Of a stretch of 41,795 nt of DNA, positions 6,919-35,032 are shown one piece after another. The DNA comes from Macrostomum lignano (lineage: Eukaryota). The stretch covers positions 1-41,795 of the forward strand of contig NIVC01004567.1 of the NCBI GenBank assembly GCA_002269645.1. Reading direction: 5' to 3'. Position 1 is the first letter of the stretch. Every line of letters starts with the position of its first letter. The notes beneath the pieces are model-generated. The model was not told the DNA's origin. It searched no databases and saw only the letters and a program-made list of their open reading frames with translations. A program made the position numbers and the translations under genes.

Positions 6919-7258
6919 CATGGATGAATGAATAGAATGGATTGCTATTCTGGCTCTGACTATTTTCGTTTTTGACTCTTTTGCATCCGGTTCCCCCCCG
7001 TGCCTTTTCATTGGTTGATGATTGCCATAGACAATTGTCAGTTACTTGCAGAGAATATCGAGCGCTCGTAGGTCTTCCCCCTTTATTTCAAAACACGAGC
7101 GAAAGCGCTTGTGCATCGAAAGAAAGGGGCGAAGGCCGAAAATTGTCTATGGCAATCATCAACCAATGAAAAGGCACGGGGGGGAACCAGATGCAAAAGA
7201 GTCAAAAACGAAAATAGCCAGAGCCAGAATAGCAATCCATTCTATTCATTCATCCATG
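6919..7258. mobile_element. Hairpin MITE with 118-bp terminal inverted repeats and an 8-bp target-site duplication
   Basis: 6919-7036 is the reverse complement of 7141-7258, with 2 mismatches by eye and a 104-bp spacer. CATGCAAT flanks both ends (6911-6918 and 7259-7266). Confidence 0.9.
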
Positions 7259-8183
7259 CATGCAATTTGTACGTAGAATAAACATTTAACATAGAAGAAT
7301 CCTAATTTTCTGAACGAAAAGCTTTATGAATGTCAATAGAGCTATAAGAAAGGCACAACATATCAAAAGATGAGAATTGGGTCTGTCTCCTATCGAAAGA
7401 AATAACAATTTTAATATGAACAACGTGAAGAAAAGTTCCAATCTCCGTAGTGTATTTTTTCGGCGAAAACCATGCAGCTCCTTAACTTTTTCTAAGAAAC
7501 ATAATTTCCCGTCCTTCTACTTTAGTTGTCCTTGACTTAACTTGACTTAGCTGCAGGGCGGTCCGAAGACGCAGCGGGGAGGCGAGCGTCGCCCATTCCG
7601 CTAGCCCTGAAGTTGTCCCAGCTAATGTTGCGTTCAAGTAGGATTTGAGCAAAAGCAGACTTCTCGAAAAAAGAAACAGGCTCTCAAAAGTGACGCCTCG
7701 CCATGGTTTCGAGCGCTTCAGAGGCGCTGATCTGTGGAGGTGGGGTGGGTCAAAGAAATTTGCAAGCAGAAGCAATTTCGACAAAAAATGCTGAGCGGAC
7801 AGATTATTCAAGTGGGATCTCTGCCGCCCTGGCAACTGCTGCTGCGGCGGCCCGCTGCACTGCCTGCCAACTGAAGACTCGCTGTGGCGAGGATGAGAGG
7901 GGTGGGAGCCCAGTGCCAGTGTTTGGACAGCGAATGCGTCTCCCAGTCACCCAGACCCCCGCGCGAGGCGAAGCCGTGGGTGGGGGGGGACTGCAGCTCT
8001 TCGGCAACATGTGGAACTCGGGGCTCTCAAGAGCTGCGCCGTCGCCCCGCTATCCACCTGTGGATCAACTGCTGCCCCCACCCTCCTCGGACACCCCGGC
8101 TTCTACAAGCTGATAAATTCGGGCCCCTTCCACGCTTGCTGTGTGGATCCAACTCTTTCCTGAGCGACACTGCTGACGTATCG

Positions 8184-8280: not shown

Positions 8281-8357
8281 ATGCGTCTCACAGTGCTGTT
8301 TCTTCTTTCTGTTTGTCTTTTTCTTGCGCTAACCAGCGACGTTGGAGAGTCCTGGGG
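8281..8357 (+). CDS. First coding exon: signal peptide MRLTVLFLLSVCLFLALTSDVGES-WG
   Basis: ATG at 8281 (aagATG). Basic n-region, hydrophobic core, small-residue c-region. The GG|GTGAGT donor (phase 2) joins the TTTCAG|A acceptor at 8479 to give WG-CGWACKR in the frame of the 585-aa ORF. Confidence 0.88.
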
Positions 8358-11300
8358 GTGAGTTTGAGTCATATTTTTGTCTTCGAATCATTCCTGCCCT
8401 TATTTTTAACAGCAAGCTTTTTCAATTAGCGTTGAAGGTGCTGAACAATCCTAACGCCTTTTTTCCACTCGCTTTCAGATGCGGATGGGCGTGCAAACGC
8501 ATGCGTCGCATCCGAGCGAGAGCCGCCAGGCTGAGGCGGCTGGCGATTCAGAGGGCCAGGGCCCTCAGGCGCCGCATCTTGCTGGCTCGGCGGAGAGCAG
8601 CCAGAGCTGCGGCAAGAGCGCGGGCCAGAGCCAGAGCTTGGGCTCGAGCCAGGGCCAGAGCTGCGGCTAGAGCCAGGGCCAGAGCCAGAGCCATTGCTAG
8701 AGCCAGGGCTAGAGCTTTAGCCAAACGGTTGGCAAGAGCCCGCGCAAGAGCTCGCGCAATTGCCAGAGCCAGAGCTAGAGCTTTGGCCAGACGTGTGGCA
8801 AGAGCACGCGCAAGAGCTCGCGCAATCGCCAGAGCCAAGGCTAAAGCTTTGGCCAGACGTGTGGCAAGAGCACGCGCAAGAGCTAGAGCCAAGGCTAGGG
8901 CTTTGGCCAGAGCAGCGGCTAGAGCAGCGGCCAGAGCAAGGGCCAGAGCTAAAGCTCGTGCCCGGGCCATCGCCAGGCGGTTGGCAAAAGCACGAGCCAG
9001 AGCTAGAGCAATCGCTAGAGCCAGGGCCAGAGCTTTGGCCAGACGTTTGGCAAGAGCTCGCGCAAGAGCTCGTGCAATCGCCAGAGCCAGGGCTAGGGCT
9101 TTGGCCAAGGCAGCGGCGAGAGCAAGGGCCAGAGCCAGAGCTCGTGCCCGGGCCGTCGCCAGAGCCTTGGCACGTGCTAAAGCTAGAGCCCGGGCTAAGG
9201 CAAGAGCTGTGGCTAGAGCATTGGCTAGAGCAAGAGCCAGAACGAGAGCACTGGCCCGAGCAAAAGCCAGAGCCCTGGCCAGGGCAGTGGCCAGAGCCAA
9301 AGCTAGAGCAAGAGCCAGAGCTAAAGCATTGGCCAGAGCCAAAGCCCTAATTCGTGCCCGAGCCCGATCTTTGGCGGCGGCGGCGGCGAGAGTAAAAGCA
9401 AGAGCCACAGCCCGAGCGAGAGCCTGGGCCAGGAGACGAGCTCTAGCCCTGAAGCGAGCCAAAGCCACAGCGAGACGAAGAGCCAGAGCTCTGGCCAGGG
9501 CCGTCGCTAAAGCAAGTAGAAGAGCAAAAGCTTTAGCTAGAGCCAAGGCTAGAAGAGTGGCCAGAGCGGCGGCAAGAGCGGCGAAGAAGATTCGAGACTG
9601 GTTCCGAAGGCGGGCCAAGCGCGGAAGAATCATCAAGAGATCAATCTACCGTCGTGTGAAGCGGCTCAAAACCCGTTTTGTCAAGTTCGTCAAGCGTCTG
9701 TTCCGCAAATGCCCACGAGGATACAAGAAGCGTGGAAATCGTTGCTACCGCCTTTACTGCCCGAAGCCGTACGTCCGCCGAGGCGCCCGGTGCGTTCGCT
9801 ACTACCGAATCTACAAGCCCCGAAAATGGTGCCCCAAAGGTTTCCGTCGAAGAGGCAGCCGGTGCATCAAGCGCATGCGCATCATCTGCGCAGCTGGCTA
9901 TCGAGTTTACCGCGGCAGATGTCACCTGGTCCGGTGCCGTCGTGGATTCATCAAGATCGGTAGAAGCTGCCGCCGCAGCTGCAAGCCCGGATTCCGACTC
10001 CGTGGCCGTTTTTGCGTTCGCTATCGCTTCCGATGCCCCAAGAACTTTTATTACCATCGAAGGCGCTGCGTCCGATTCCGCCGAGGATCGACAAGGTAAT
10101 TTTTGAAACTGCGAGTAGCATAGCATTTGAAATTGTTGCAATGCAAACCTAAGATGCGCGTGCAATTTTTTACTGTAGATGCCCGAGAGGATACCGCAGG
10201 AGAGGCAGAAAGTGCTTGCGCACCGTTCGATCGTGCCCGCTTAACTACCGCCGCCGAGGCAGGCGGTGTGTCAAGCGCTGTGCAAGCGGCCGGGTGCCTC
10301 GGCGCATTCGCCGCGGAGTGATCAGGTGCGTTGTCGTCACGTCCAAGTGCCCACTCGGTTACAGTCTGCGACGCGTGCGACGCGGAAGGCGCTACAGGTA
10401 CTTTCCTTTAGTAGCAAATGTGAATACAAGATACTTTAAGAACAAAATAAATACTAAGTATTACATCTGCTTCAGGTTCCGCTGCGTCATCAATGCTGGA
10501 AGATGTGCACGTGGATTCAGACGAGTCAAGCGATACAGACGTGGCTTTTCTTGCGTTCGCATTGTCTGCCCGAGACACTACAGGAAACGCGGATCTCGAT
10601 GCGTCTACCGACCACCCAAGGGTGGCAGCCGAAGATGTCCGGCAGGTTACAAAAAGGTGCGAGGCGTCTGCAAGAAGCTGAACTGCCCGGCCGGCTACGT
10701 GCGCAGGGGATCGCGCTGTGTGCACACCAGGTGCCCCCGTTTCTACCGCCGAGTGGGCAGATTCTGTGCCCGGATACGCTTTGTTGGCAAATGCCCAAGA
10801 GGCTGGCGCAGGACTGGCCGTCTCTGCCGCAGACGTGTGTGCCCGAGCGGCTTCAAGAAAGTTGGTCGCTACTGCATGCGTAAGTCCTTAACATAAATTG
10901 CAGTTCTCACTAAAGATGCAGTCACTTGAGCACTGGGTAATGCAGATAACCCACAACGCTTTAGCGATTTGAATCAAATAGAAATAGAATTGCGGCTTGC
11001 GATTTGCGGATATTTTATCCGACCGAACCAATTTTTCAATAAATATTTACAGGAAAATCCTGTCCATCTGGATTTGTCCGACGTGGTCGGGCTTGCTACA
11101 GAGGTGAGTTGATCCAAGCTCCTAATTGATGAATGATTCTCAGTTTTTCGAGTAAAGCGCGCAGCGACAGTTATTAAATATTGTTTTAATATTAAAATTT
11201 TAGCCCGATGCGCTCGCGGCTTCAAAAAGATGGGAAGCGTGTGCATCAGTGAGTGACTGACGGTTTTGATTTAAGTTTTAGTTTTGAACCAGTGTACAGA

Positions 11301-14300
11301 ACGCATTATTGTAACGAATTTAATTATTCGCCCTCCAGGACGCTGTCCAAGCGGCACCAGAACGACGCGGTATTTCTGCATCCGCAAGCGTTGCCCGAAA
11401 TTCTTCAGGCGCGTTGGGCAGAGCTGCGTTAGAGGTTTGATGATCTTGATGCTGACTAGATATCTTAACAATGCTGGATTAGATCTGTGCAGACAATAGT
11501 TCAAGAAATTTTCACCTGTTCCTTATGATGACCTACTTCAGCTCGCTGTCCCTCCGGCTACGTGGCCCGCTCCTACCGCACTAGAGTGTATCTCAAGCAT
11601 CGTGTTACCGGATACACCAAGAAGTGCACCTGCATTAATGGCAAATCAAGTGCCAAGCCACGGGCAAACTCCATCGATGTGGCTTTTGTAGTTGACGTGA
11701 GCGGCAGCATGGGCCGAGTCATCAGCGCCATCAAGAAAAACATTGTCAACGTCATCAACGTCAACGCTAAGTCCAGAGTGGTACGTAAAATAAAATCAGC
11801 GGAAATTCCCCCTCATCCATCAGGACAATTTGAAAATGATTAATCTTAACCTTCCACTGTGTCTCCTCAATTCAGGTGGACAAATTCATTCTCGTGCCGT
11901 TCGCGGACCCAAAAGTGGGACCAGTGACAATCAGCAGAGGTCGGTCCCGCCTGCACAAGAGCAGGCTTATCAAAGCGGTCAGGCGCATGCGAGCCAGCGG
12001 TGGCGGCGACTGTCCGGAGATGAGCCAGTCCGGCATGTACGAGGCGCTCCGGCGCGTCAAGCGAAACTCCATCGTCTACGTGTTCACTGATGCCAGTCCG
12101 TCGAGACGAGACAAACGGTTGGAAATTTCACTACTTGATTAAACAGTTATCTTTAAAATATTTGCTACAAATAAACAATCATGCAATAAACCCTTCTAGT
12201 CTAGTGCAACAAGAAAATGAAGTAAAAATAAACCATTTGAAACTCCTATTACAGACGACAGGCCGACGTGCTCCGGCTGTCGAAGAGCAAAAACGTGCAG
12301 CTCAACTTCCTGCTCACCGGTCCAATGTGCGGCAAAAGGAATTCGTACAAAAACTTGTCAAAGAAATCGAAAGGTGCCTGGATCAAAATGAAAAGGTCGA
12401 CAACGTACCGCGTTTTGCGCTTCCTCAGCAAGGCCATCCCCAAGGGCGCCACCGCTCTGAGGATGCTGAACCGGCGCGGACTATCCTCATTCATCAAAGC
12501 AAGGAAAACATGCACTTGCCACCGCATTGCCAGAATGAAGGCCCGTTACAAGTACGTCAGCTCGGTGAAATGCTTTGTCAGGCCTCGGCCAAGCACTGGC
12601 CGCTGCTCCAGAATCCTGAACCAGCGAAGGCGACTAAGACGCGCGGCCCAGCTTTACCGGCGTCGCATGCGAATTGGCAGGCGGTCAGCGCGGCGAAGAA
12701 GCGCCAGGCGATTCCGGGCAGTCAGAAAGCAACTGCGAGCGATTGCAAGAAACCTGAGACGCTGCTACAGAAGCAAAACAAGAAGTAAGACGGGCAGCTT
12801 CAAAATTTTCAAAATATAAAATTATTTAAATGCTAAGGAAAATTCAGAATTAAAAAAACTATATTTTCGTCAAAGTACTCTCTTGCAAAAGGAACTAACA
12901 AAAAGTCACTAGGATTAAGTTCTAGAGTGGAGTGTATGAGACCAGTATATTATATAATGCTGTGTCAATCTACAGAATAGTTGAAGCAAAGAGACTGATG
13001 AAGAAAACATAAAACTCGTTTCTTTTTAATAACCTTCAGATTTGTGCAGAAAGGTCAGATGCGGACGGGGTAGACGCTGTTTCGTCCGAAACATGCGCCG
13101 CCGTTTCGGATCTGTCTACCGCTACGTCAGAACCGCATCCTGCAGGCCTGTCAGGAGTAAGAATTTTTTTGTAATCCTTCTGGTTCATTCAAGTATTTTA
13201 AGGAGACAAATTCAGTCTCTGAATAACATCACTTTGTGGCAAAAACTGTTTTATAGATCTGTGCAGAAGAGTCCGGTGCAAGTCGGGTTATCGGTGCCGA
13301 GTTTCATACCAGCGCAGAATAGTGACCCGCAGGGTGACTCGATTCGTCAGAAAGTGTCCATGCCGCAAGGTCCTGGTTAAGCCATCCGCCTCCAAAAAGA
13401 AGACAGGCCTGGTCGACATGGCGTTCGTTGTAGATACCACAGGAAGCATGGGCAGAGTCATCAAAGGAATCCGGTCAAGCATCAAGCAGATTGTGGCTGC
13501 AAACAGGCGTACAGTCAGTCGCTTCGTCATCTCTGCTTTCAATGATCCAAAGGTAAGGATTAAAACACAACAAGTGAAGTATGGACTCTCCAATCCCAAT
13601 AACAGAAAATACAATGACACTTGGGATCAACGTCGTTTTTTTTCAGGTTGGTCCAATTACTGTCAGCTCAAGAGCCAGAACAATTTTTGCCGCAGTGAAC
13701 AGACTTAAACCCAGAGGAGGTGGCGACTGTCCTGAAAGGAGCATGAGCGGTATTCTTGCTGCCGCTAAGCGAGTGAAGTCCGGATCGGTCATCTACGTGT
13801 TCACGGATGCAAGCGCAAAAGACAGAGGAAGGAGGCGTCAAGTAAGCTAATGGATAAGTTATTGTGTTCAGTTTCTGATTAGTAGTCCTTGGCAACTGCA
13901 CAAAAGGTTTCCTGTTTTTAAAAAAAATGCATACTTTCCACTACTTTCAGGTTCGAGAAATTGTGAAACGGAAGTCCCTCCAAGTGATGTTCATCATCAC
14001 AGGTCGATTGTGCGGCCGAAGCTACCGCAAGGAGTACCAATATGTGTCGAGAGGCAACGGCCGGGTTATAAAAACAACAAGTGGACGCATCAAGAAGGTG
14101 CTCAGCTTCATCCAAAAAGCGGTCAAGTTAGGAAGCCGCCGACTGAGGCGCTTGAACCTCTCTCACCTGTCGAAGTTCATCCGCAAGTGCCACTGTCGCC
14201 GCGTCAAACAGAGGGTCACAAGAAGATACACTAGAACCAGGCGAGTGGCCAAGTGCACAAAGAGACCAAAGGGAGCTTGCTCATCGCGAAGATGCAGTAA

Positions 14301-17300
14301 GGGCTACAAGTGTGTGCACTATCGAGTAAAAACACGTCGAGGCAGCGGACTTAAAACACGATGTGTCAGCATCAATAGTGAGTATTTCTTCTCCAATATA
14401 ACCCTGCCTCTTCACTAAACTTTAACCTTTGCTCAAAAACTCAACAAAACTTTCTCTAGACCCATGCAAGAAAATGCGTTGTCAGAAAGGACGCAAATGC
14501 ATTGTGCGCTTCTTCGGAAGAGTCTACAAAAAAGGAAAACGGCGTGTTAAGTTGGTGCGCAAAAAAGCCGTCTGCGTCAAGCGAATATCAAGTAAGATAT
14601 ATTTAATAGGCTGAAAAACTTTGACCTGTAAGAAAAATTGCAACACTTCAACATCATCAAAAACCTGTAGACCTGTGCAGAAGAGTTCGTTGTGGAAGAT
14701 ACAGGCGCTGCATTGTCCGAAGACTGAGAAGAGGATCACGACGCATGGTAGCACGATGTGTAGGTCCAAAGCCAAAAGGTAAGCTCTAAGCAGAAAAATT
14801 GGTATTTTATATTCATCTTGAGCCAGCTAAAAACTTTTGCCCCAGTGCGATACTCCACTCACTTGGTAGGCAACGCCACTCAAAATATCAAAGACGAAAA
14901 ACATTTTAAAAACTTACAGGTAAGTGCGGCCGACGAACCTGCCGAAGGAACCAGAGGTGCGTGACACGAAGATCTAGCAGGCGAATCCGAAGCCTCAGAA
15001 GAAGCATCAACAAACTGCGACGAGCTCACAGGAGCAGGACTGTCGCCGAGAGACGACGACATGCAGCCTCCATCCGAAAGAGCCGAACACCAGCTCGCTA
15101 CCGCCGTAAGCAATACTACTGAAACTGCTTTTTTGGCAACATGTAACAACGCTAGCGAATATAAATGCATTTCGTGTTCAGTATTTCGTTTTGGTTGTTT
15201 ATATCACGCTTTCACTTTGCATACTTCTCCGCTTCAGGAGTGCGAGTGAAGCACGCTTGCGAGGGCAAATCTCTGACCATCAGATGTCCATCCAGATACG
15301 TCATCCGGGTGCTGCGCGGATTCTATGGCAGAACATCTAACAAATACTGCGCTCGAGGACCCCGCAAGACATACAAGTGCAGCAGCGGCCGAGCCAACAA
15401 AGTCATCGCTTCCAAGTGCAACAACCGGCGAGCATGCAGGGTGCGAAGCAACAACGCCGTCTTCGGAGATCCTTGCCGCGGAACATACAAGTACATGACC
15501 GTGAGGTACAGATGCCAGCTGGCTTCATCGGTTGTGTCTAGCTACGCGAAGCGCAGAGCTCGACTTGCACGACTGCACAAGAGACGATTGAACGCTCTTC
15601 GATCGAGGCACAGGCGCAGAGTCGCTCGACTGATCCGACTGCTGAGACGAGCTAGACGAGGATCGAAGAGATGCGTCCGAAGGAGACGACCTTCCAGAGG
15701 TTAGTCGGCTATTCGGTCGACCGTTTATTTAAAGCAAAACAAATGCAGAAATTATTGATGCCCCACCTAGTAAATTGCTTCCTCAAATATCTAGTGAGAC
15801 TTTGAGCTACGGATTTTAGAGTTGAAGCACTTTCACCGAAGTTCATACGTTGCTCCTCACCGAATCACAACATACTTAGGCAAGAAATGCGGCCGACGAA
15901 CCTGCCGAAGGAACCAGAGGTGCGTGACACGAAGATCTAGCAGGCGAATCCGAAGCCTCAGAAGAAGCATCAACAAACTGCGACGAGCTCACAGGAGCAG
16001 GACTGTCGCCGAGAGACGACGACATGCAGCCTCCATCCGAAAGAGCCGAACACCAGCTCGCTACCGCCGTAAGCAATACTACTGAAACTGCTTTTTTGGC
16101 AACATGTAACAACGCTAGCGAATATAAATGCATTTCGTGTTCAGTATTTCGTTTTGGTTGTTTATATCACGCTTTCACTTTGCATACTTCTCCGCTTCAG
16201 GAGTGCGAGTGAAGCACGCTTGCGAGGGCAAATCTCTGACCATCAGATGTCCATCCAGATACGTCATCCGGGTGCTGCGCGGATTCTATGGCAGAACATC
16301 TAACAAATACTGCGCTCGAGGACCCCGCAAGACATACAAGTGCAGCAGCGGCCGAGCCAACAAAGTCATCGCTTCCAAGTGCAACAACCGGCGAGCATGC
16401 AGGGTGCGAAGCAACAACGCCGTCTTCGGAGATCCTTGCCGCGGAACATACAAGTACATGACCGTGAGGTACAGATGCCAGCTGGCTTCATCGGTTGTGT
16501 CTAGCTACGCGAAGCGCAGAGCTCGACTTGCACGACTGCACAAGAGACGATTGAACGCTCTTCGATCGAGGCACAGGCGCAGAGTCGCTCGACTGATCCG
16601 ACTGCTGAGACGAGCTAGACGAGGATCGAAGAGATGCGTCCGAAGGAGACGACCTTCCAGAGGTTAGTCGGCTATTCGGTCGACCGTTTATTTAAAGCAA
16701 AACAAATGCAGAAATTATTGATGCCCCACCTAGTAAATTGCTTCCTCAAATATCTAGTGAGACTTTGAGCTACGGATTTTAGAGTTGAAGCACTTTCACC
16801 GAAGTTCATACGTTGCTCCTCACCGAATCACAACATACTCAGGCAAGAAATGCGGCCGACGAACCTGCCGAAGGAACCAGAGGTGCGTGACACGAAGATC
16901 TAGCAGGCGAATCCGAAGCCTCAGAAGAAGCATCAACAAACTGCGACGAGCTCACAGGAGCAGGACTGTCGCCGAGAGACGACGACATGCAGCCTCCATC
17001 CGAAAGAGCCGAACACCAGCTCGCTACCGCCGTAAGCAATACTACTGAAACTGCTTTTTTGGCAACATGTAACAACGCTAGCGAATATAAATGCATTTCG
17101 TGTTCAGTATTTCGTTTTGGTTGTTTATATCACGCTTTCACTTTGCATACTTCTCCGCTTCAGGAGTGCGAGTGAAGCACGCTTGCGAGGGCAAATCTCT
17201 GACCATCAGATGTCCATCCAGATACGTCATCCGGGTGCTGCGCGGATTCTATGGCAGAACATCTAACAAATACTGCGCTCGAGGACCCCGCAAGACATAC

Positions 17301-20300
17301 AAGTGCAGCAGCGGCCGAGCCAACAAAGTCATCGCTTCCAAGTGCAACAACCGGCGAGCATGCAGGGTGCGAAGCAACAACGCCGTCTTCGGAGATCCTT
17401 GCCGCGGAACATACAAGTACATGACCGTGAGGTACAGATGCCAGCTGGCTTCATCGGTTGTGTCTAGCTACGCGAAGCGCAGAGCTCGACTTGCACGACT
17501 GCACAAGAGACGATTGAACGCTCTTCGATCGAGGCACAGGCGCAGAGTCGCTCGACTGATCCGACTGCTGAGACGAGCTAGACGAGGATCGAAGAGATGC
17601 GTCCGAAGGAGACGACCTTCCAGAGGTTAGTCGGCTATTCGGTCGACCGTTTATTTAAAGCAAAACAAATGCAGAAATTATTGATGCCCCACCTAGTAAA
17701 TTGCTTCCTCAAATATCTAGTGAGACTTTGAGCTACGGATTTTAGAGTTGAAGCACTTTCACCGAAGTTCATACGTTGCTCCTCACCGAATCACAACATA
17801 CTCAGGCAAGAAATGCGGCCGACGAACCTGCCGAAGGAACCAGAGGTGCGTGACACGAAGATCTAGCAGGCGAATCCGAAGCCTCAGAAGAAGCATCAAC
17901 AAACTGCGACGAGCTCACAGGAGCAGGACTGTCGCCGAGAGACGACGACATGCAGCCTCCATCCGAAAGAGCCGAACACCAGCTCGCTACCGCCGTAAGC
18001 AATACTACTGAAACTGCTTTTTTGGCAACATGTAACAACGCTAGCGAATATAAATGCATTTCGTGTTCAGTATTTCGTTTTGGTTGTTTATATCACGCTT
18101 TCACTTTGCATACTTCTCCGCTTCAGGAGTGCGAGTGAAGCACGCTTGCGAGGGCAAATCTCTGACCATCAGATGTCCATCCAGATACGTCATCCGGGTG
18201 CTGCGCGGATTCTATGGCAGAACATCTAACAAATACTGCGCTCGAGGACCCCGCAAGACATACAAGTGCAGCAGCGGCCGAGCCAACAAAGTCATCGCTT
18301 CCAAGTGCAACAACCGGCGAGCATGCAGGGTGCGAAGCAACAACGCCGTCTTCGGAGATCCTTGCCGCGGAACATACAAGTACATGACCGTGAGGTACAG
18401 ATGCCAGCTGGCTTCATCGGTTGTGTCTAGCTACGCGAAGCGCAGAGCTCGACTTGCACGACTGCACAAGAGACGATTGAACGCTCTTCGATCGAGGCAC
18501 AGGCGCAGAGTCGCTCGACTGATCCGACTGCTGAGACGAGCTAGACGAGGATCGAAGAGATGCGTCCGAAGGAGACGACCTTCCAGAGGTTAGTCGGCTA
18601 TAATTGTCTTGTTTTTATTAATTTTTGTAGATTTGTAAAAACCTTTTTCTAATTTCTTTTTTTTGGTTTATATTGTTATTGAAAATACCTGCACCCGATT
18701 TTTAGGTTTGTGTGCTAAAAAACGGTGCTCCAAAGGCAAGCGTTGCATTGTGAAACGAACTATCACAAAAGCGGGCCGTAAATTTCACTCAGAGAGACGT
18801 AGAATGACCAAAGGATATCGCAAGCAGATTCGAGCTCTGAAACTAAGGTTTGTAAGAAGTCGGCGATCTGCAAAGTTGTCTTACGGACGGGCATCAGCTG
18901 CTTTTAAGAAGGCTATTCGGAAAGCATCTAAGGCGAAGAAAGCTGCCTCTGTTAAGAGCTTGAGAAGATCCTGGAGACTTCGCAGAAGATCTTACGTTTT
19001 GAAGCTTCGTAAAGAAAGAAGAAAGTTCTTGAAGGCTAGAAGAAGTCTCAGCCTGCGTTTTAGGCGTAGCCTATCAAGCCATTCTCGAAAGAATCGAAGA
19101 ACTAAGACTGCTGTACGAGCTGCTGTTTGTGTAGTGAATCAATGTTCAAAAGTCAAGTGCAAGTCGGGATTCTCTTGCAGGCATGTGAGGCGGTTTACAA
19201 AGAAGTTTAGCGCATTCCTTCGTCAGAAACGAGCTTTGACAAAGTCTTACTTTGCCAGTCACAAGAAGATCACGTTGGCTTACCGAAGAAGAAGTCGCCA
19301 AGCTGCAAGAAACTTCCGCAAGTATGCCGCAACTTATCGCTCGAGCTTCAAGCGAGCAAAATCTGGCAGTGCGAAGAAACGTCTCAGAGTTGCGTTCCGT
19401 CGTCGAGTAAGAAGCTTCAGAAGAAGTAGGCGCGCAGCTTTCAAGCAGTATCGTCGCTCAGTACGACTGGCTAGGCGCCGCTTGGCTCAAAGGCTTAGAT
19501 CACTGCGTAAGAAGCAAGGCAAGGGAGTTTTCAAGAACCGCGTTAGGACTGTGGCTCGATGCATCAAAAAGGCGACGAGTGAGTGCTTTGTTTTTTTTAA
19601 CTGCGACAGATATTTTAGTTACACTACTGCAATATACCTGCATTTCTTTTCGCCCACCTTTGCATATCTAGGATCCTGTCGAAAAGTTCGATGCTCAGCT
19701 GGAAAGCGCTGCGTGGTTAAAAAAGTTCCAACTTGGTGGTACAGGCTTTACCGCATCAGTGTGAAGAGGGCCTACAGACGGTTCCACACCCGGCTACGCC
19801 GCACTGTGCAAAAACTCCGACACCGACACAGAGTGCACCGTAGATTTTTGGCACGGAGAAGCAGAAGAGCAGGAAAATCATTTTCTTTCTGGCTAAGACA
19901 CGCTTTGAGACGCATTCGCAGATCCCGGCGCTCTCGAGTCCGTCGTGTTCGCAGGTCAAGGCGTAACCTGAAAAGATTTGTTAGAAAATTGCGACGAGCT
20001 CGCTCTCGACTGTGGGGAAGGTTCAGAAGAGCTGCAAGGCGCTATGGAAGGCGATTCAAAAAGCTTTTTAGAAAATTCTCTCGACGAAAGGGACGGCGTG
20101 GACGTTCTTCTCGTAGACGACGCGTTCCAAAATCAGTTGTTCGCCGATTCAGAAGGAATCAGAAGAAGTACGCCAGACGCGTCTTCTCATTGAAAAGCTG
20201 GTTCGGAAGAAAAGCGAGAATTTTCAAGGCTCTGTATTACAAGTCTAAAAAGGCGACCAAAGCAGCAAAGAAATCGATCAGGAAAAAGATGCGCTCTTTG

Positions 20301-23300
20301 TATAGAAGAATTTCCAGGGTTTATCGAAGAAGACTGAAACGAGCTGTGGTTTCGTACTACAAGAAAAAGAGCATCCTTGCAACCTCTCTACAAAGAAGGC
20401 TTCGAATGTTGCGCAAGCGACTTGGCAGACGCAAGGGACGGCGATTTATTCGTCGGGCCATGTGCGTTGCCAAAAATCCTTGCAGAAGAAAGCGCTGTAG
20501 ACGGGGATACAGGTGCAGAGTGCGCAGAGTCAAGTCAAAGAGGGGTCGAAAAATCACTGTTGGACGCTGCGTCAGAAAGTCTAGTAAGTAATCGTTATGT
20601 TAATTCAATAAATAGCAATATTTGCTATTCCTTCTGCCCATAAGCTCGTATTATTTCCGAATGAGGCAAACAGTGCATGATATTTTTTTAATTTCAGATC
20701 CATGCAGCAGAAAGAAGTGCGGAAAGAACCGTCGCTGTGTGGTGAGAAGGATCCCAACTCGAGCCTTCCGGCTGTACCGCTTCTATCTAAGAGTCAGTAG
20801 GAAACGTTTCCGTCTTCGAATGCATGGCATACGCAGGAGGCTTGGCCGTAGGCGTCGACGTCTGGCGGCCCGCGCTATCCGTCGAAACCGACGCTTGAGA
20901 CGATCAGCCGCTCGGCGATTCCGAGGCCGACGACGGGCAAGACGCTTCCGAAGTTTGAGACGGTCACTGAAGCGCACTCTTCGAAGGCATCGCCGTCGTT
21001 CGACCCGGTCGTACCGACGAATTCGCAATAAGCTAAGACGGCGTCTGAGACGCGCCACAAGGCGACAATACAGACGACTCATGCGAAACAAACGGCGCTA
21101 CATTACCCGCGCCGTTTGTGCACCAAAGAGAGCAAGTGAGTCACATAATTTCATTTTTTCTCACATGCGGTTTCTTGCACTTAGAGACGCGAGAGAGATA
21201 TATTATTTTCCGATCAAATTCATTCAGATCCATGCAGTAAGAAGCGCTGCCCAAGTGGATCCAGGTGCGTCGTGCGCAGAAGAGTTCCAAGGCTGTACAG
21301 GCGCTTCAGAAAAATCGTAAAGCGTCGCTATAGAAGATACGCTATTGCAAGGCGCCGGCTCTCCAAACTTAGTCGCAGAAGACGAGCGGCAACTGCTAGA
21401 AAGTTGAAGCGTTCCCTGAAAAGAAAATTGAGAAAGATCTGGAAAACCTTTAAAAGACGCGGAGCCTTTAAACGAAGTGGGCGTTTGGTAGCTCGCTGTT
21501 ATAAGCCAGGAAGTAAGTTGACAAAGGCCCGAGATATTCGCTTGCGGCTTGCGCATCGCTAACTTATGCTGTCTCTGAATTTTAGAGTTTTGCCCGAGCG
21601 GATACCGTCGCCGGGGACGAACTTGCGTCGGCTACTATCGGGTGTGCCCGCGAACTTTCACTATGATTAGGAACAAGCGCGGAGGGCGGTGCATCAGTAA
21701 GCCAATTTTATTGTATAACGACTAGGAAAGCTTTCTCAAAGACTTTCCAGCGATTATCATAGATTATTAACTATTGCTCTCAAAAAAAATATTGCAGAGT
21801 TCAACAAGATTTGCAAGTCCGGCAAATTTTTGTTCAATAACCGCTGTTGGCGAAAATGCCCTCGTGGCACCAGACGCTCATCAAGACGGTCCTGCAAGCG
21901 TAAGTTAAAAAGGGGCGTTGTCTAGTTTTTTTGTGATTCTTTACTTATTGGTAAAGCAGAATATCAATACTCAACCTGGCATTGCGTAATACGGTTTTAG
22001 TTGTCAAGTCATGTCCTGCATTCATGCTCAGTAGACGATGCGTCAAGAGATGTCCAAGAAGATTCGTCGCGGTGGGTCGTCGATGCAGGCGTAAGTTTAG
22101 AAGTCTGAAAACAATCCTATGCTTTACTGCCTTTTGAACCGATTTCACAACTAGCCAAAATGTTTTTTACAGGATGCCCACGAAACTCTTTCCGACGAGG
22201 AAACAACTGCTACCGTGAGTAAATTCATTGTTAAAAACCAAATCTTGACTACTGACTCGTACAACAGAAATTTTTTGCTTACCGCGTTGCTTTCGGTTGG
22301 TGTATTACAGGCCGCAGAATTTACTGCCGCTCTGGATTTTCTTACCGAGGAAGATGCAGAAGTAGATGCCCGGCCCGCACTTATGCAAGAGGACGAAGAT
22401 GCATCCGTAAGTATTGCGCAAGAGAGCAAGCAGTCCAATGTCTGTGCAAAAACAAAAAAATCATTCAACCATCCAGTACAATAGTGGATTAATGCAATCA
22501 GCTACGACAAATTTTAGGAGCTCGCTGTCCACGCGGATCAAAGGCCAGACTCAGCATCCGAAGGGGCAAAATCGTTTGCATAAGTATGAACTATTTGATT
22601 TTTATATGCGGTTTAGAAGCGGGCTGCTTTTTAAATACGAACTCATTCTCATCTTCTGCATTTCCCTTTGCAGGAAAGCGCGGTTGCAAGCGTGGCCTGG
22701 TTTACTACTCTGGCTCTTGCCGATCGAAGTGCCCCAGTGGAACCGTCGACGACGCTGGTACTGCCTGAAGATCTGCAAGAAGGGCTTCATGAGAGTGGGA
22801 TTCCGCAGACAGAGATGCATCCGGGCATACTGCTACAACAAGTTCCGCATTGGCCGGTCCTGTGTGAGAAAGTGCCCAGTCGGCTACATTGGAATTCGAC
22901 GAAAGTGCCGAAGAGTTTCCATCTCGTGTCCCAAGGCCTACGTTAGGCTTGGCCGCGCGCTCTGCCTCAGAAATTGTCCAGCCGGTTTCACCAAGAGGGG
23001 CAAACAATGCGCGTACTCCGCCTGCCGCAAGGGAACATACAGGTACCGAGGCACCTGCATGAAGGGCTGTCCAGCTGGAACAAAGCGACGAGGATCGTAC
23101 TGTTTCAGTAAGTTATTTGCCTGTTCAATGTAGCATGATTTAACCCTTTCAACGTCATAAAAGTTATTCCACACATCTAAAATTTTAGAGAGAAGCAAAT
23201 GCCGCTTTGGTCGCTTCGCCTACGGAAAGCGATGCCTGGTGAGGTGCCCGCCTGGTCACTATCGAAGCTTTGCTAGACGATCGTGTGTCAGTGAGTATTT

Positions 23301-26300
23301 CTCTTTGATTCGGCTATGCTTCTCTTAGCTGTAACCGCTAATTCGATATACGCTATTCAATTGCTAAATCAAAACATTTCAAATCTCTTATATACATCGA
23401 TTATGTTCCAGGAATCAAGCACTGCAAAAAAGGTCTGCTTAGATTCAGAAGACTCTGTCTCAAAACGTGCCCTCTTGGCTTCCGAAGAAAGAGACGAAGC
23501 TGCGTACGAAAATACGTCTGCCGAAACGGAAAGATGTACAGAGGAGTCTGCATCGTTACCAAATGTCCTTCTGGAACTCACAACATTCGAGGATCGTGCG
23601 TTCGCACGCGTAAGTCTGATTAAAGGGTTGAATGAGGGATTAATTAATTGCAAAGCGCAATGACCAACTTACAAACATCTTTTTTTTCATTCCATCTTAG
23701 CTCGCCTCTGCCCGTCTGGTAGGCTGCTGCTAATCAAGCCGAGTGGTGCTAGATCTTGCGTTCGAGCCTGCCCAAGGACCTACACAGTTGTTAGGTCGCG
23801 GGGCTCTTGCAAGCCTACACGCTGTCCAAAGGGCATGTACCGTCTGGGAATAACATGCAGAAAGTCCTGTCCCAAAGGATTCCGTGCTCGAAGAGGTCGC
23901 TGTAGAGCTGTCAGAAAGAGCTGCAAAGACGGCCTGTTCCGACTCCGCAGGCGTTGTGTGAAGCGATGCCCAAGAGGCTTCAAGGCCAGAGGAGGTCGCT
24001 GTAGACGAGTGCCTTTCAGATGCAAGAAAGGAACTTTCAGGTTCAGAAGGCGTTGCGTCAAGAAATGCCCGAAAAAATACACCGGTCGCGTCTACAAGCG
24101 GGCGAGAAGAGCGCCAGTCCGATACTGCAGGCCTATTAGAAGCTGCAAGAAGGGACAAGTGCTCGTTTACAGACGGTCACGGAGTCGCTACAGGTCAAGA
24201 TGTGTCAGTGCAAGCAAGCCTTGCAAAACTGGTTACGTGCTGAGAAGACGTGTCGTACGATTTAATAGAGGCGGAAGGAGGGTGCGCAGAGTGCTAAGAC
24301 TGTGCAAGAGAGCCAGGGAAAGCTGTGCCAAGGGATTGTTCTTGTTCCACGCCAAGTGCAGAAAGCAGTGCCCAAGAGGAATGAGGACATTGTTGGTTAG
24401 ACGATCAAGAAAAGTTGTCCGCACATGCAAGCCAAGTAAGGCCGTGATTTCATCTGATTGAATAGAGAGAATTCTATATTTCTAGAAAATAGTGTCTAAA
24501 AAGCTAATTTGCATACAAACTTTCAGAATGCGGTAGAAAGTTTGCTTTCCGAAGCAAATGCGTCAGAAGGTGCCCACGTGGATACACAGCAAGAAGATTC
24601 AGGTTTATCAAGTTCTGCAGGAAAGGTGCGAGTTAAATTTAATAAAGTGCCTGATTTAACAGTATGCTAATGGAATATCTCCAGTTTCACTTACAAGCAT
24701 CGATTTAAACATTTCAGATTGCCCCAGAGGAAGATTCGCGTTCAGAAATTCGTGCATCTCGCGGTGTCCAGCAGGCTACAGAAAGCGAAGATATCGAGTG
24801 TATTCCAGACGATCAAGAAAGCTTGTTTCCATCACCAGCTGCGCCCGGAAAACTAGTAAGTTGGCTAGCCCTGATGCTTAACCGAGACAACCTTTAATAA
24901 CTGTCAATAAATATTTCATTATTTTCTCTATTGTAGAATGCCCATCAGGATACCGAATAGTGTATCGTCTCAAGCGAAGTGCTAAGGGCAGGTCAATCCG
25001 ACCAACTAAGGTCTGCAGACCAGGTATTTTTTTAGCTTTTTGTCCTTCGGATAAGCAAGTAAAGGCGTAGCAAGCATAATAAAAATTAACTATAACAACC
25101 TATATTTCTTCAGTGAGACAGAAGAGCTGCAGATATCCAACTGCACTTGCCTTTGGTCGCTGCTTCCGCCGTTGCCCATCCGGTTACTACAGACGGTCCA
25201 GAACTGTTCGCGGGCGAAGACTTGGATTCTGCCTGCCAACAAAGCTGACAGTCCTTTGTCGCCGCCGTCGCTGCGGCAAGACAAAGATGTGCATCATCAG
25301 CCGAAGAACGAGAGTTTTCAGGGCCGGAAAGCGAGCAGTTCGTCGAACTGTACGAAAGCCCGTCTGTGTTCCACGATGTAAGAAAGAACATATTCTGTGC
25401 TTAAGATGCATGACTGTTATTTAAGTTTTTTAAATCGACTTCTGAATTTCCCATTTCCCTGCAGACTGCAAAGCCGGAACCTATCGTCACAGGCGCAGAT
25501 GCGTTCGAAAGTGTCCACGCGGCTACATTAAACGCTCTTCGAAGCGTTTCAGAATGCACAAGGGCCGCAGAATGGCATACAAAGTGAGACTCTGCACGAG
25601 GAAACTGTGCAGGTATCCCATGGCCAGATATAGCACACGATGCGTTAAGCGTTGCCCAAGCAGATATGAAAAGAAAGTATATCGCCTCAGATTCCGCTAC
25701 AGGCGATCGAAGTTCATCAGACGCTATGCTGTATGCCGACGCAATCTCTGCTCAAAGGTCTCCTGTTCAAGAAACCAGAGGTGCATTGTAAAGACTCTTC
25801 CAGGGCGCAAAGATCGGCAAGTGGCTGTTTGTGCTAATAAAAACCCGTGTGCCCGGATGAGGTGCCGACGAGGATTTAAATGCCGAATTAGACGAGTATC
25901 TGGGCGCAAACGAGCATCATGTGTTCCTTCTATGCCTTTCTGCAAGGCTGGATTAGTTGGCTTTGGCAAACGATGTCAGCGGCGTTGCCCTAAAAATTAT
26001 AGGGTTTTGAGCAAGAAGATCGGAGGACGACTGTACAGAATGTGCGCCAGAGACGCATGCTCACGAGGCCGATTTTTCTCAAGTGGACGATGCGTGCCGC
26101 GCTGTCCGAGTGGCTTTGCTGGAAAATCTATCAGGTATTCTAGGTCATACATCTTCAAGTACTGCGCTCCGAAAGCTTGTAAGCGCAGACTGTTTAGACT
26201 TGGCGGACGCTGCGTGAAGCGCTGTCCTTCAGGATACAGGAGACGATACTTCAGGGCTAGACGAGGTGTTCGAAGATACTGTGCCTCATCTGCCTGCAGG

Positions 26301-29300
26301 AAAGGAACATATAAGCTTGGAAAGCGTTGCGTCAAGAACTGCCCAAAGAATTACAACAAGAAAACAGTAAGAAAGGGGTCGAAATCTTATGCAGCTTGTG
26401 TGCCCAAGAAATGCCCCGCCAAGTCTATGTTTATTAAGGGTCGCTGCAGAAAAGCATTGAAGGGCTGCTACGATAGGACATTCGCTTGCAAGGGTTGGGC
26501 TAGAAAGAAACGGTGCTCAAAAAAGCTGGTTAAGTACTTGTGTCCAGCGTCCTGTGGCACCTGCAATCCTAAGAAGAGAAAGCTCTGCACCTGCATATCC
26601 ATGGGCGATCCACACTACCGTACATTTGATGGAAAATGGATCCACTTCATGGGAAAATGCAAGTATCTGTTGGCCAAGTCCAAACTACGAAAATCTTCTA
26701 GGTGCAACTTCTCTGTTGCAGCAAAGAATGAAGTTCGTGGAAAGAGACGAAGAGTCAGCTGGACAAAATTCGTTGACATTAACATTCATGGATTGTCTAT
26801 CCGCTTGCACCAGAAACGTCGTGTCTTCTTCAACGGCAAGAGAGTTCGAAGGCTACCTGTTTCGCTCTACAAGAGAGGCAAGAAGCTTCGAGTTTACCGT
26901 AGTGGAAATAATGTTGTTGTTGAATCAAAGTACTGCGGCTTGTATCTTGAGTTCAATGGCAGATCAGTGGCCGAACTGCACCTTCCAAAATCCCGGTTCG
27001 CTGGAAAGGTTCAGGGCATCTGTGGAAATTGCAACGGAAATCCTAAGGATGATTTGAAAACCAGAAGTGGAAAGGATGTCTCCAAGCTTGGTTCAAAGGG
27101 ATTCGTGCAGATCGGACAATCCTATCTTGTCGCTGACCGTTCCACAAAGAGCTCGCGATGCAAAGTCAAACCTGCATCAACATCAAAATGCTCAAAATCA
27201 ATGAAGCGAAAGATCAAATCTAGCAGATTCTGTGGCCTTATTTCAAACAAGAAGGGGCCATTCAGAGCTTGCTTGAAATCCGGAAAAGTTGATTATACCA
27301 AGATCTATAAGAGCTGCAAGTTTGACGTTTGTCAGTACCGAAAAGCTAAAAATCGCCGAAAGGCTGTGTGCGAGTCCCTGGAAACTCTTTACAACGCTTG
27401 CCTGGCCAAGGGATTCCGAGTGAGCTGGAGAAAACGCCGGTTCTGTCCATTGAAGTGCGGTGCCAATTCTGTATTCAGAAGAAAAACAAGTGGCTGCCCA
27501 AGAACATGCGCCGATCTAGGTCGACGAAGAAAGTGCCGTCTGCCATCCCGAGAAGGCTGCGCCTGCAAAGAAGGCTACGTACTCAATGGAAAGAAGTGCG
27601 TCCCCGAAAGAATCTGCGGCAAAACAGTGCCACTTGATCTGGCCTTCGTTGTCGACGGAACAGATGACGTCAGTTCAGATGAGTTTGAAACACTGAAGAA
27701 CTTGATCATCAAGCTTCTTACAAAGTACAGACTGTCTTCTAACTCTGTACGACCAGCAATTGCAGTGTTCGGCAGAACAAGCCCAACTGTAAGTCTGTTT
27801 AACCAGCGCCCCGGAAAAGCTGACTTCATGGCATTCGTCAGAAAAATGAAGAAACCAGGAGGATCAGCTGATAACTTGGATGCCGCTCTCCGGGTTGCCA
27901 ACAAGGTGATGATGAACCCAATGGGAGGCGCAAGACCAGCGGTTCCAAAGTATATTCTGTTATTGAAGAAGAGCAAAGTTCCAGCGTCATCGGAAAGTGT
28001 TGTCAAGAGCGAACTAGATTCGCTGAAAAAAGCTAACGTCCACGTGGTTGCTGTCACTCTCCCACCAACAAAACCAGGAAAGACCGACACGGCTATTGGT
28101 GGATTGTCAGTTATCCCAGCACGAGTGCCACCGTATCTTGCAATCCCGAAGATCACCAAGGAGCTGGAAAAGACAGCTGGCTGTACTTCTGGATATAAAC
28201 GACAAGGCAAACGCTGTATAGATGTGAACGAGTGCGCAGCAAAGGTACCACCATGCCATTCTGACAGCACCTGCGTCAATTTGCCAGGCAGCTTCATCTG
28301 CCTCTGCCGCGAAGGCTTCCGACATGACAGATCCCGTGGATGTGTGTCTCTGAAGAAGGAGAAGTGCCCAAGCAAACCGAAATGCGACAATGGCTACCGC
28401 TTTGATAAGGCAAAGGGCAAGTGTGTTGACATCAACGAATGCAAAGAGAATCCGTGCTTGGGTGATAGTGCTACTTGCGTCAATACACCAGGCAGCTTCA
28501 AGTGCAAGTGCAAGACTGGTTTCGAGTACAACAAATACTTTGGTTGCGTTGACATCGACGAATGCAAGGGAAAAGATCCTTGCGCTGGTTCCGGAAAGTG
28601 CATCAATACACTTGGCTCGTTCAAGTGTACCTGCGACGAGGGTTACACTTACAAAACCGGTCTCGGCTGCAAGGATATCGATGAGTGCGCAGCTGGATCG
28701 CATAACTGCAAGGGCGGTTCGAAGTGCATCAACACGGCTGGTTCTTACAACTGCAGCTGTGACTCCGGCTATCGCTACGAAAGCAACAAGTGCATTGACA
28801 TTGACGAGTGCGCTGAGGACAGCAAACTCTGCGACGCATCTGCCACATGTGTAAACAAGAAGCCAGGCTATGAATGCCAGTGCAAACTTGGCAGCAACTG
28901 GGTGCACAAGGCTGGAAGAGGGTGCGTGCCAGATGAGAAGAAGGGAATGTCTCAACGAAAGGTTGATTTTATCTTCACCATTGATGGTAGCGACAAGCTG
29001 AAGTCATCTGAGAAGGACATCAAGGATTTCTTGACCCGCCTGCTCAATAAGTTTAAAGCCAATGAGTTGAAGGGTCTGAGCGTGCGTGCATCGGCCATTA
29101 TTATGGGCAAAAGGGAGGTGCGGATATCAAATTTAGCCAAGCTGACCTGTCTGGAATCGATGACAAGATCAAGGCGCTTAACTTCCCTGGAGGAAAGGCA
29201 AACCTTCTCGACGGAATGAAGAAGGCAAATCGGGAGCATGCAAAGGCCAGAAACGGAAGCACGCCGATCGTGTTCCTCATCACTGGTTCGAACATTAAGC

Positions 29301-32699: not shown

Positions 32700-33130
32700 A
32701 GAACAAAAGAATTCACCGATGAAGACCCAATGGAAGTCTCCGTACAAGAGACTGTAATGGAAGGATATTGCGACCTTGTCCGGACTGCCAGGCACTGCTT
32801 CCTCCGAGGTGACCTCGAGAGTGAACTTTGCCCCTTTTGCGAATACAACGAAGATGCTCAGCACTTTGTATGTCACTACTCTTCTTTACCAGAGACCGGC
32901 TACGCTACCTCGGCAGCATCCCACGGCTCATCCAGTTCCTTTGAACGACAGGACGAGCCACTTTCTTTCCTAACGGAAGAGATCACGCTGCAGGACAGAC
33001 TGGCGGACCACCCTGACCGGCCCCACGCCTCTGCCTGTCTGCGGGCCTTCAGGGGCTGGCGGAATGGGCGACCCTCGCCTCCCCGCTGTGTCTACGGACC
33101 GCCCTGCAGCTAAGTCAAGTAAAGCATCGA
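32700..33130 (+). mobile_element. Degenerate 3' end of a non-LTR retrotransposon (C-terminal zinc-knuckle region)
   Basis: ELCPFCEYNEDAQHFVCH resembles the LINE ORF2 C-terminal CxxC..E..H..C knuckle, and the stop is followed by a short TAAGTCAAGTAAAG tail. No RT core is visible. Confidence 0.45.
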
Positions 33131-34202
33131 AAGTACTTTATTTATTCTAAGCTGCTTCACATTGCAGAAATGCTACGCAGCTTCAAAATCCTCAACCTGA
33201 AGAAATAAATTGGCACACATTAGGGCATAATTGAGCTCAGTTCGAAGGGAGACTAATTAGCAACAAAAAACCGGAGAATTTGGTTTGCCCTGCTCAAAAT
33301 AAAATCAAAATCGGGCATTGAATGGAGCCAATCGATAATATCGAGTTTAATTATGCCAATTCAAGAGGCGGCAGGAAAACCAGCCGGCCTCGGGTGCAGA
33401 TCACGCACAATGGTTGCAATAGATTGATTACAGCAGCAACTAAAAACAACTCTGTGAGCGACAGAACTGCTGCCGGACTGACAGCCTGCCTGGATGCGTA
33501 CGGGCCAATCAGGTGTAAAAAGGTAAAACAGCCAGTGGCACTGCTAGTCATGGATGAGTCATGGGTGAGTCATGGGTGAGTCATGGGTGACTCATGAGTG
33601 AGTATGCTGGATAGTCAGAGCAGCACAATGAAGCGACACGAACAGTATAGCAGTATTGTACAGGTGTGAATCGATGACGCCGAGTGCGCGGAGTGCTTAA
33701 TGCCGCTGGTCAGTCGTATAAACGGTGCCAGGCTCCGTGTTCTGCTGGGGTAAAAATATGAAAACAAAAACAAAAAATCGAAAAGTGGCGAGGGTCCAAG
33801 TCATTGGGTTACTACAGGCTAGAATACAAACGCATTGTGGAGCCGCAGTTTGCTGCATGGGGGGGCCAAAAAAAGCAATTTACAACGCCACTGTATCACA
33901 TTAGGTATCACACTGTATCATGATTAGGTAATACTTTTAGAACAGGTGGGTGGATAATAGCGCTTGGGCCGGTGCAGGAGAGGAAAAGGAAGCTGAGCTA
34001 AGAGTTTAATCCTGTGGGATCGGCTGGACATCAGTCTTTAGATTTTAGTTATCATACTGCAGTTTTTAGTTATCATACTACTAACTAATCTACCACTCAG
34101 TAGCGCATTAGGGAGAATATTTGTATCAGAATTCTGCTAATGAGGAAGCGTAATGAGAGCTCGCAGCGGTAAGTTCGGGCGCACGGCAAGCGAAATTGAG
34201 CC

Positions 34203-35027: not shown

Positions 35028-35032
35028 GCGGA

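Follow-up and report, generated by a model that had tools for sequence, protein, structure and literature searches.

The module of the avian cysteine-rich eggshell membrane proteins (CREMPs) is a small repeat with the cysteine spacing Cx4Cx5Cx8C, in which an N-terminal loop sits above a small β-hairpin between the third and the fourth cysteine (C3 and C4) (PMC12723725). Its disulfides were assigned by nuclear magnetic resonance as C1-C3 and C2-C4, and the module is in effect an EGF domain without the third disulfide; according to its authors, it is sometimes annotated as follistatin-N-like (PMC12723725). CREMP proteins carry VWFD domains at the end and are annotated as zonadhesin-like (PMC12723725). 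The present study deals with a 41,795-nucleotide stretch of DNA from the flatworm Macrostomum lignano (assembly GCA_002269645.1, contig NIVC01004567.1, positions 1 to 41,795 of the forward strand; hereafter the window) and in particular with positions 18706-21512, where a giant gene encodes modules with a related cysteine frame and very long, arginine- and lysine-rich segments between C3 and C4.

The second point of reference is the adhesive system of flatworms. Macrostomum footprints, the deposits left behind on surfaces by the worms, were analyzed by mass spectrometry by Wunderer et al. in 2019 (sheets 'footprints_Trypsin_intact_1' and '_2' of their tables), and the discussion there covers only Mlig-ap1 and Mlig-ap2 as adhesion proteins (PMC6410801). 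Mlig-ap1 is composed of a C-type lectin, a vWD-C8-TIL unit and 17 EGF domains, flanked by Gly/Arg/Lys low-complexity repeats (PMC6410801). Attachment of flatworms is blocked by heparin and their release by free cations (PMC6410801, PMC8621496, PMC9229212).

Cysteine modules at 18706-21512

The gene to which this segment belongs lies on the + strand at about 8281-31221 and was traced from a signal-peptide exon to a stop at ~31221. Its spliced model comprises ~5,908 residues (~691 kDa) with 21.8% Arg, 10.4% Lys, 376 Cys and a net charge near +1,740. The segment 18706-21512 consists of four exons, all with GT/AG borders and all in phase 1 at both ends, which upon splicing give 836 amino acids; these include exactly 24 Cys, in a pattern C1-x4-C2-x5-C3-loop-C4 that recurs six times. 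Each exon contains whole modules only (8, 8, 4 and 4 Cys, respectively). Exon 1 (18706-19578) encodes module 1 (C1 at 18711, C4 at 19128) and module 2 (C1 at 19143, C4 at 19560), exon 2 (19672-20583) encodes module 3 (C1 at 19677, C4 at 20463) and the compact module 4 (C1 at 20481, C4 at 20568), exon 3 (20698-21135) encodes module 5 (C1 at 20703, C4 at 21117) and exon 4 (21228-21512) encodes module 6 (C1 at 21233, C4 at 21497). The C3-C4 loops of the six modules have 127, 127, 250, 17, 126 and 76 residues and are all free of Cys. The Cx4Cx5C motif, found six times here, never occurred more than twice in 50,000 shuffles of the 836 residues, and motifs of this type are not present on the minus strand of the window. 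The 836 residues contain 31% Arg, 12.7% Lys, no Asp and two Glu; the loops are rich in Ala and Leu in addition to Arg and Lys and have little Gly (3.5%) and Pro (1.2%), and the net charge of the long loops ranges from +38 to +113. An independent UniProt model, A0A1I8JL43 (P0091), agrees with this splicing at the junctions and differs from the 836 residues by three substitutions. The intron 19579-19671 is in frame and stop-free, and exons 1 and 2 can therefore be read as one open block of 650 codons; an intron near 10.4 kb of the gene model has a similar read-through look.

In total, the gene contains 18 modules: the six described above, four that bear a lectin (see below) and eight compact ones elsewhere, with C1 at 13045, 13262, 14278, 14465, 14676, 25257, 25749 and 25848. 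The C1-C2-C3 spacing is invariant in all 18 as well as in 14 modules of a paralogue. An earlier note on this DNA had described a recurrent cysteine motif with compact and long-loop copies; both kinds are real, and the compact copy quoted in that note is module 4, its further copies being those at the eight positions just listed. It had estimated the long loops at ~125, 150, 250, 125 and 70 residues, and four of these five values come close to 127, 250, 126 and 76, the second being too high for a loop of 127. The residue leading into the motif, given there as D or N, is mostly N (N-P-C) after splicing, the D being a product of reading through an acceptor site.

A profile made from 15 compact modules of this gene and the paralogue was searched against all PDB sequences. 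The only significant relative was 9PGB (9pgb_A), a '4-module cysteine-rich eggshell membrane protein' (E 6.5e-5, 26.5 bits), and the match spans the C1-C3 part only of all four CREMP modules. A centipede peptide toxin followed as a weak second match (E 0.11), and no SPARC or follistatin chain among the PDB sequences was matched. With Pfam, FOLN (PF09289, SMART SM00274; the follistatin/osteonectin-like EGF domain) was the sole family matched by more than one compact module (2 of the 15); the best score of 14.1 bits (E 0.057-0.06) lies below the curated cut-off of 21.1 and covers profile positions 1-12 of 22, corresponding to the C1-C3 half only. Of the 15 compact modules in the alignment, at least 70% have the glycine expected in C-x4-C-x2-G-x2-C. 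The C4-x-C5 element is missing in 16 of the 18 modules, a fifth Cys in the form C-P-C occurring only in the 13262 module; the 25257 module has an additional Cys four residues past C4. Pfam detected no Kazal domain anywhere in the gene and no FOLN match for either the insertion-deleted concatenate of modules or the full-length models P0090 (the longer form of the paralogue) and P0091. The follistatin-N label proposed in the earlier note is hence loose and sub-threshold, as the modules fail to match this family even after their insertions are deleted, an outcome that the note itself had named as refuting. Because of the 9PGB match and the sub-threshold FOLN scores, the flatworm modules are best called CREMP-type, or truncated-EGF, two-disulfide modules, and their C1-C3/C2-C4 pairing is assumed by homology to CREMP. 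Judged from the sequences, the C3-C4 hairpin is the variable element of the module and the insertion site in this lineage.

Predicted fold of the insertions

AlphaFold2 was run on module 5 only (20700-21134), with a shallow seven-row alignment of paralogous modules, and returned a model with pLDDT 95.2 and pTM 0.71. The predicted elements are a strand at residues 11-19 that carries C3, a helix at 21-73, a turn at 74-75, a helix at 76-128 and a strand at 134-142 that carries C4. The two strands pair, and the model therefore places C3 and C4 in paired strands with a helical hairpin of 53+53 residues between them; by standard helix geometry, 53 residues per arm correspond to ~8 nm. The turn adjoins Gly76 in the motif RGRRRA, which is common to module 5 of the paralogue, and a Gly is located at the exact center of loops 2, 3 and 5. 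The hydrophobicity of loops 1, 3 and 5 has an α-helical period of 3.67-3.75 residues. When the amphipathic moment in a sliding window was compared with that of shuffled sequences, z reached 8.5 for loop 3, 4.3 for loop 5, 2.8 for loop 6 and 2.5 for loop 2. A disulfide-stapled knob from which long cationic helical hairpins extend had been envisaged from the letters of the DNA, with AlphaFold on single modules as a check; the prediction for module 5, with its β-hairpin base and two helices, shows the expected layout and supports that idea at the level of a model.

When the module 5 model was compared with the PDB by Foldseek, nothing significant was found (best E 1.9), the top insignificant matches being generic helical hairpins such as those of Vipp1, HlyD/LipC/EmrA and SMC arms. 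Similarly, phmmer gave no match for module 5 among the PDB sequences. The stapled-insertion architecture had not been recognized from described proteins at the outset, and none with this layout was found in the literature, sequence or structure searches.

Lectin-bearing units

Upstream of the six modules, four tandem SUEL-lectin units (14920-18588, + strand) are encoded by one exon X and one exon Y each. Exon X contains C1-x4-C2-x5-C3 followed by a basic arm, with three Cys in total; exon Y encodes a SUEL lectin with eight Cys, a basic arm of 51 amino acids and then a single C4 in an R-C-V context, adding up to nine. With three Cys in exon X and nine in exon Y, the C3-C4 loop of such a unit is read as a lectin flanked by two arms; 55 residues lie between C3 and the outer Cys of the lectin on that side, and 51 between the other outer Cys and C4. 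The four C4 are found at 15672, 16635, 17598 and 18561. The SUEL domain (PF02140) scores 71.6 bits in Pfam against a cut-off of 31.4, and the eight Cys and the YGR and DPC motifs are intact in the sequence. The paralogue has the same nested-lectin layout. Its lectin unit was modeled with AlphaFold2 without an alignment, which gave both arms as single long helices (16-62 and 169-208); since confidence was low (pLDDT 49.6), only the helical nature of the two arms, themselves at pLDDT 60-72, is used here.

At the DNA level, 14,930-18,600 holds 3.8 copies of a 963-bp unit that are 99.9-100% identical, introns included. The array was measured as identity at lag 963, Tandem Repeats Finder being blind to it (period limit 500). 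It represents either a very recent duplication or a copy number that is sensitive to assembly. The number of lectin units differs in other models of the locus (P0089, P0091).

Paralogue and evolution of the loops

With the stop-free read-through open reading frame 18708-20582 as query, 1.84 billion representative proteins were searched exhaustively by phmmer. Only two proteins matched, both from M. lignano: an automatically generated model of this gene (P0089; 99% identity) and the paralogue (P0088, with P0090 as a longer form; 41% identity). A word-indexed homologue search with the spliced 836 amino acids found one paralogue only, among low-complexity candidates that saturated the list. The seeming limitation to a single species is in part a matter of which sequences the databases contain.

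The modules of the gene and the paralogue are collinear, with the C1-C3 frame unchanged throughout. Upstream of the six modules, the loops in the gene and the paralogue measure 20/20, 19/19, 16/15, 24/24 and 15/98 residues, the 98-residue loop being the counterpart of that in the 14676 module. For modules 1 to 6, the values are 127/127, 127/88, 250/331, 17/18, 126/126 and 76/63. Loop length is thus labile and the disulfide frame fixed, as the paralogue loops differ while the C1-C3 frame is constant. In the 331-residue loop of paralogue module 3, about nine tandem copies of TNKASETKQK occur (P0090 residues ~1220-1310), which are of mixed Lys/Glu charge, unlike the basic remainder.

Occurrence in footprints

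Two entries of the footprint tables belong to this gene: one of 10,771 nt and 3,590 amino acids with an isoelectric point (pI) of 11.5, labeled {RNA815_38}{RNA1310_79.1}, and one of 11,590 nt and 3,863 amino acids with a pI of 12.1. All 24 distinct peptides retrieved from the two entries fit the gene; 23 map directly and one, DSAGNPTLSGVVSGR, crosses the 30854/31135 splice junction. The tryptic peptide AAVCVVNQCSK (19119-19151) lies within the six-module segment, where it connects C4 of module 1 with C1 of module 2, and CQLASSVVSSYAK and SNNAVFGDPCR stem from the lectin units. The protein is expressed, secreted and present in footprints. Neither Mlig000911 nor RNA815_38 or RNA1310_79.1 was found in the literature covered by text searches or in the supplements consulted for two Macrostomum RNA-seq papers.

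Layout of the gene and its surroundings

The first coding exon (8281-8357, + strand) was read from the sequence; it encodes the signal peptide MRLTVLFLLSVCLFLALTSDVGESWG and ends at a GTGAGT donor in phase 2, which is spliced to the exon starting at 8479. There follow, at 8479-10095 (+), a Cys-free (RA)n-rich region of ~430 residues and very basic, furin-like CPxGY repeats. The (RA)n-rich region lies directly after the signal peptide (8500-9800) and has a 66-bp periodicity; long (LA)n open reading frames on the opposite strand are artefacts of this repeat. The CPxGY repeats are followed by two VWA_4 domains, and compact four-Cys modules flank the second of these on both sides. The composition-based exon chain splits the non-basic VWA_4 exons wrongly, and the exon borders at ~11.8-13.6 kb are approximate, since the peptides VGPVTISR and FVISAFNDPK show that the true VWA_4 exons are longer. 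After the first VWA_4 domain (12339-12784), two Cys ~55 residues apart bracket a Cys-free basic stretch (GRC...RRCYR), which may be a simpler version of the same clamp.

Two compact modules with loops of 20 and 19 residues, the second ending in C-P-C, are encoded just before the second VWA_4 domain (13040-13357, +). Three more (14278-14778, +), with loops of 16, 24 and 15 residues, precede the lectin units, and the second and third of these occupy one phase-1 exon each (14460-14591 and 14671-14778). Beyond the six modules, a run of exons for very basic furin-like CPxGY repeats extends over 21586-25376 (+) and includes one compact module at 25257-25367; two adjacent compact modules with loops of 15 and 12 residues are found at 25749-25922 (+).

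The C-terminal block (26500-31221, +) consists of VWD, TIL, VWA, five EGF_CA, a second VWA, FN2 and an FN1-like domain; a C8 domain was not detected by Pfam in the gene. Its best cross-species matches are annotated as zonadhesin-like, as are the CREMP proteins. NCBI PAA67297.1 ('hypothetical protein BOX15_Mlig000911g1', M. lignano), a model that stops early where its contig ends, matches the open reading frame 25554-29219 with 100% identity; its identity to the block as a whole is also 100%, apart from a 1-bp gap near 29115. At this point the window reads GGG and contig NIVC01001495.1 GGGG, with the effect of a frameshift within the second VWA domain. The peptide FSQADLSGIDDK (29132-29167), identified by mass spectrometry, is in the post-shift frame, so the expressed gene is intact; the single-base difference in the G run probably goes back to an assembly error or to a variant allele.

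A 127-nt inverted repeat (arms 6913-7039 and 7138-7264, 96% complementary, 98 nt between them) lies ~1 kb upstream of the signal-peptide exon; it gives rise to short mirrored open reading frames on both strands and is possibly a small foldback element. Downstream of the gene (33000-41795), the GC content rises to 56-62% at 34-38 kb and falls to 30-37% over the remainder of the window, beyond 38 kb. A minus-strand open reading frame at 37258-38157 contains an (SQSV)n repeat.

Proposed mechanism and alternative explanations

The explanation that is favored overall, and that is considered reasonably probable, is that CREMP-type modules have had their hairpin loop expanded into polycationic helical hairpins, within a protein that serves as a glue or mucus scaffold. 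The base of each module would be a short β-ladder clamped by the disulfides C1-C3 and C2-C4, from which an antiparallel helical hairpin would project by ~8 nm in module 5. In the four upstream units, a rhamnose/galactose-type SUEL lectin would be held between the two arms. The whole protein could then resemble a bottle-brush whose backbone bears rigid polycationic bristles as well as stalks tipped with lectins and ends in domains (VWD/TIL/VWA/EGF-Ca) that mediate multimerization in other proteins. Folding despite the charge would probably be helped by counter-ions. Multivalent charge binding to polyanionic glycans, together with SUEL binding to galactose- or rhamnose-type sugars, might result in a cohesive glue or mucus scaffold. 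Such a polyanion-binding function, which we infer from the architecture, has a precedent in the role proposed for the disordered Gly/Arg/Lys-rich (GRK) regions of Mlig-ap1 and of the ap3 proteins of other flatworms (PMC6410801, PMC8621496, PMC9229212).

Several points weigh against this explanation. AlphaFold2 is often over-confident on idealized amphipathic helices; moreover, it ignores electrostatics, and a hairpin with a net charge of ~+63 may therefore need counter-ions or not fold. Loop 1 has no significant amphipathic periodicity in comparison with shuffled sequences (z = 0.5), and the repeats in loop 3 of the paralogue are off the loop center, so the long loops need not all be two-helix hairpins. 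Bonding of C4 within its own module is inferred, on good circumstantial evidence. In addition, vitellogenin, tubulin and myosin also occur in the footprint samples, and presence in footprints consequently indicates expression and release or shedding rather than a role in adhesion, which the authors of the footprint study attributed to two other proteins (PMC6410801). An alternative is a beads-on-a-string arrangement, in which C4 forms a local knot with C1-C3 of the next module and the basic segments are disordered polyelectrolyte linkers. C4 is only 4-10 residues ahead of the next C1, a very high like-charge density disfavors the packing of helices, the known polycationic adhesive regions of flatworms are of low complexity and presumably disordered, and the aperiodic loop 1 fits a linker. 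This arrangement is nevertheless thought unlikely. Three of the five junctions between the six modules have an intron between C4 and the C1 that follows; the compact modules that stand alone (14460-14591 and 14671-14778) each have C1 to C4 all on one exon; and the array of lectin units opens with a C1 exon and closes after a C4 exon. The distance from C4 to C1 varies between 4 and 10 residues, in contrast to a constant C1-C2-C3 spacing. After the final C4 (21497) come furin-like repeats whose Cys count is even, and under the beads-on-a-string arrangement this C4 would thus be left unpaired. Furthermore, the homologous CREMP module pairs C1-C3/C2-C4 internally, the loops are amphipathic and poor in Gly and Pro, and the predicted structure of module 5 pairs the strands bearing C3 and C4.

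The same structure could also serve a defensive, antimicrobial or bacteria-agglutinating mucus protein, the helices of which would target the surfaces of microbes, and the SUEL lectins their rhamnose- or galactose-containing glycans. Cationic amphipathic helices resemble host-defense peptides in composition, the YGR and DPC motifs of the SUEL domain are intact, and fish-egg rhamnose-binding lectins bind bacterial glycans. In footprints, the protein occurs together with other material of the body in general, and a search of supplement files of the positional RNA-seq paper, which are possibly incomplete, did not return its transcript ID. However, the large multimerizing block at the C-terminus and a size of ~690 kDa are at least equally in line with a structural matrix, and a defensive role is regarded as improbable, somewhat more so than the beads-on-a-string arrangement. 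An identity with Mlig-ap1, or a close copy of it, would make the protein one already described, and a number of traits recall Mlig-ap1: it is giant, secreted, very basic and Cys-rich, has a lectin, VWD-TIL and EGF-Ca domains and occurs in footprints. Yet the gene encodes SUEL, VWA, VWA_4, five EGF_CA and FN2, with neither a C-type lectin nor a C8 domain detected, and its basic regions are Gly-poor (3.5% G) rather than GRK repeats. The Mlig-ap1 antibody peptide is missing from all six frames of the window, and the footprint transcripts RNA815_38/RNA1310_79.1 are not among the six Mlig-ap1 transcripts. On the grounds of described domain content, repeat type, epitope peptide and transcript IDs, this identity was rejected as extremely improbable.

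If the CREMP-type reading with expanded hairpins is extended to reversible attachment, the protein might represent a hitherto unrecognized class of structured super-polycation, built of arrayed, disulfide-clamped and arginine-rich helical hairpins of 8 nm or more, some of them with a lectin between the arms, and a third major functional component of the glue, which would bind galactose-bearing Mlig-ap2 and anionic glycans and be freed by a polyanion from the releasing gland. This extension is speculative and is held to be rather doubtful. For the field of bioadhesion, the locus provides an abundant, unstudied, hyper-cationic and lectin-bearing protein in Macrostomum footprints, where the current model of reversible attachment is based on interactions between charges and includes two glue proteins only. 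Should the predicted fold hold, a minimal two-disulfide EGF-type hairpin can clamp very long charged helical hairpins as well as nested domains. This would be an insertion platform so far undescribed for the module family, with possible uses in protein design, such as rigid polycationic spacers or binding domains on stalks. The paralogues also indicate that loop length can change fast (15 vs 98 residues in counterparts) with the disulfide frame fixed.

Comparison with known systems

The kind of module is known; for its giant polycationic insertion, predicted to be a helical hairpin, and for the nested lectin, no earlier description was found. Laminin LE (EGF-like) modules are interrupted by an inserted L4 globular domain, and in this respect they likewise nest a whole domain in the loop of an EGF-type module. 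They differ from the flatworm modules in the type of module and in the loop that is used, have no helical stalk arms and are not polycationic. With FOLN, the flatworm modules share the C1-x4-C2-x5-C3 spacing and the glycine, from which they depart in that they are sub-threshold, mostly without C4-x-C5 and without Kazal domains.

Small two-disulfide repeats in giant extracellular structural proteins are also known from the DPY module of Drosophila Dumpy and from the Chironomus silk protein Sp185 (PMC12723725). The DPY module has a different cysteine spacing (Cx5Cx5Cx4C), and long insertions are not reported for DPY or Sp185 (PMC12723725). The GRK regions of Mlig-ap1, Mile-ap3 and Tmed-ap3 are similar in being polycationic parts of giant secreted footprint proteins (PMC6410801, PMC9229212). 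They consist, however, of Gly/Ser/Pro/His low-complexity repeats without Cys, whereas the modules described here would form Gly- and Pro-poor amphipathic helices closed by disulfides, and no sequence relationship between the two was detected.

The closest likeness is to CREMP, with which the flatworm protein has in common two-disulfide C-x4-C-x2-G-x2-C modules in tandem runs within a secreted protein with VWD-type domains. CREMP, which is not hyper-basic, has a C3-C4 hairpin fixed at 8 residues (78 of 81 modules). In the flatworm modules, by contrast, the same position holds 12-250 residues (331 in the paralogue) or a whole lectin, and in none of them does it hold 8.

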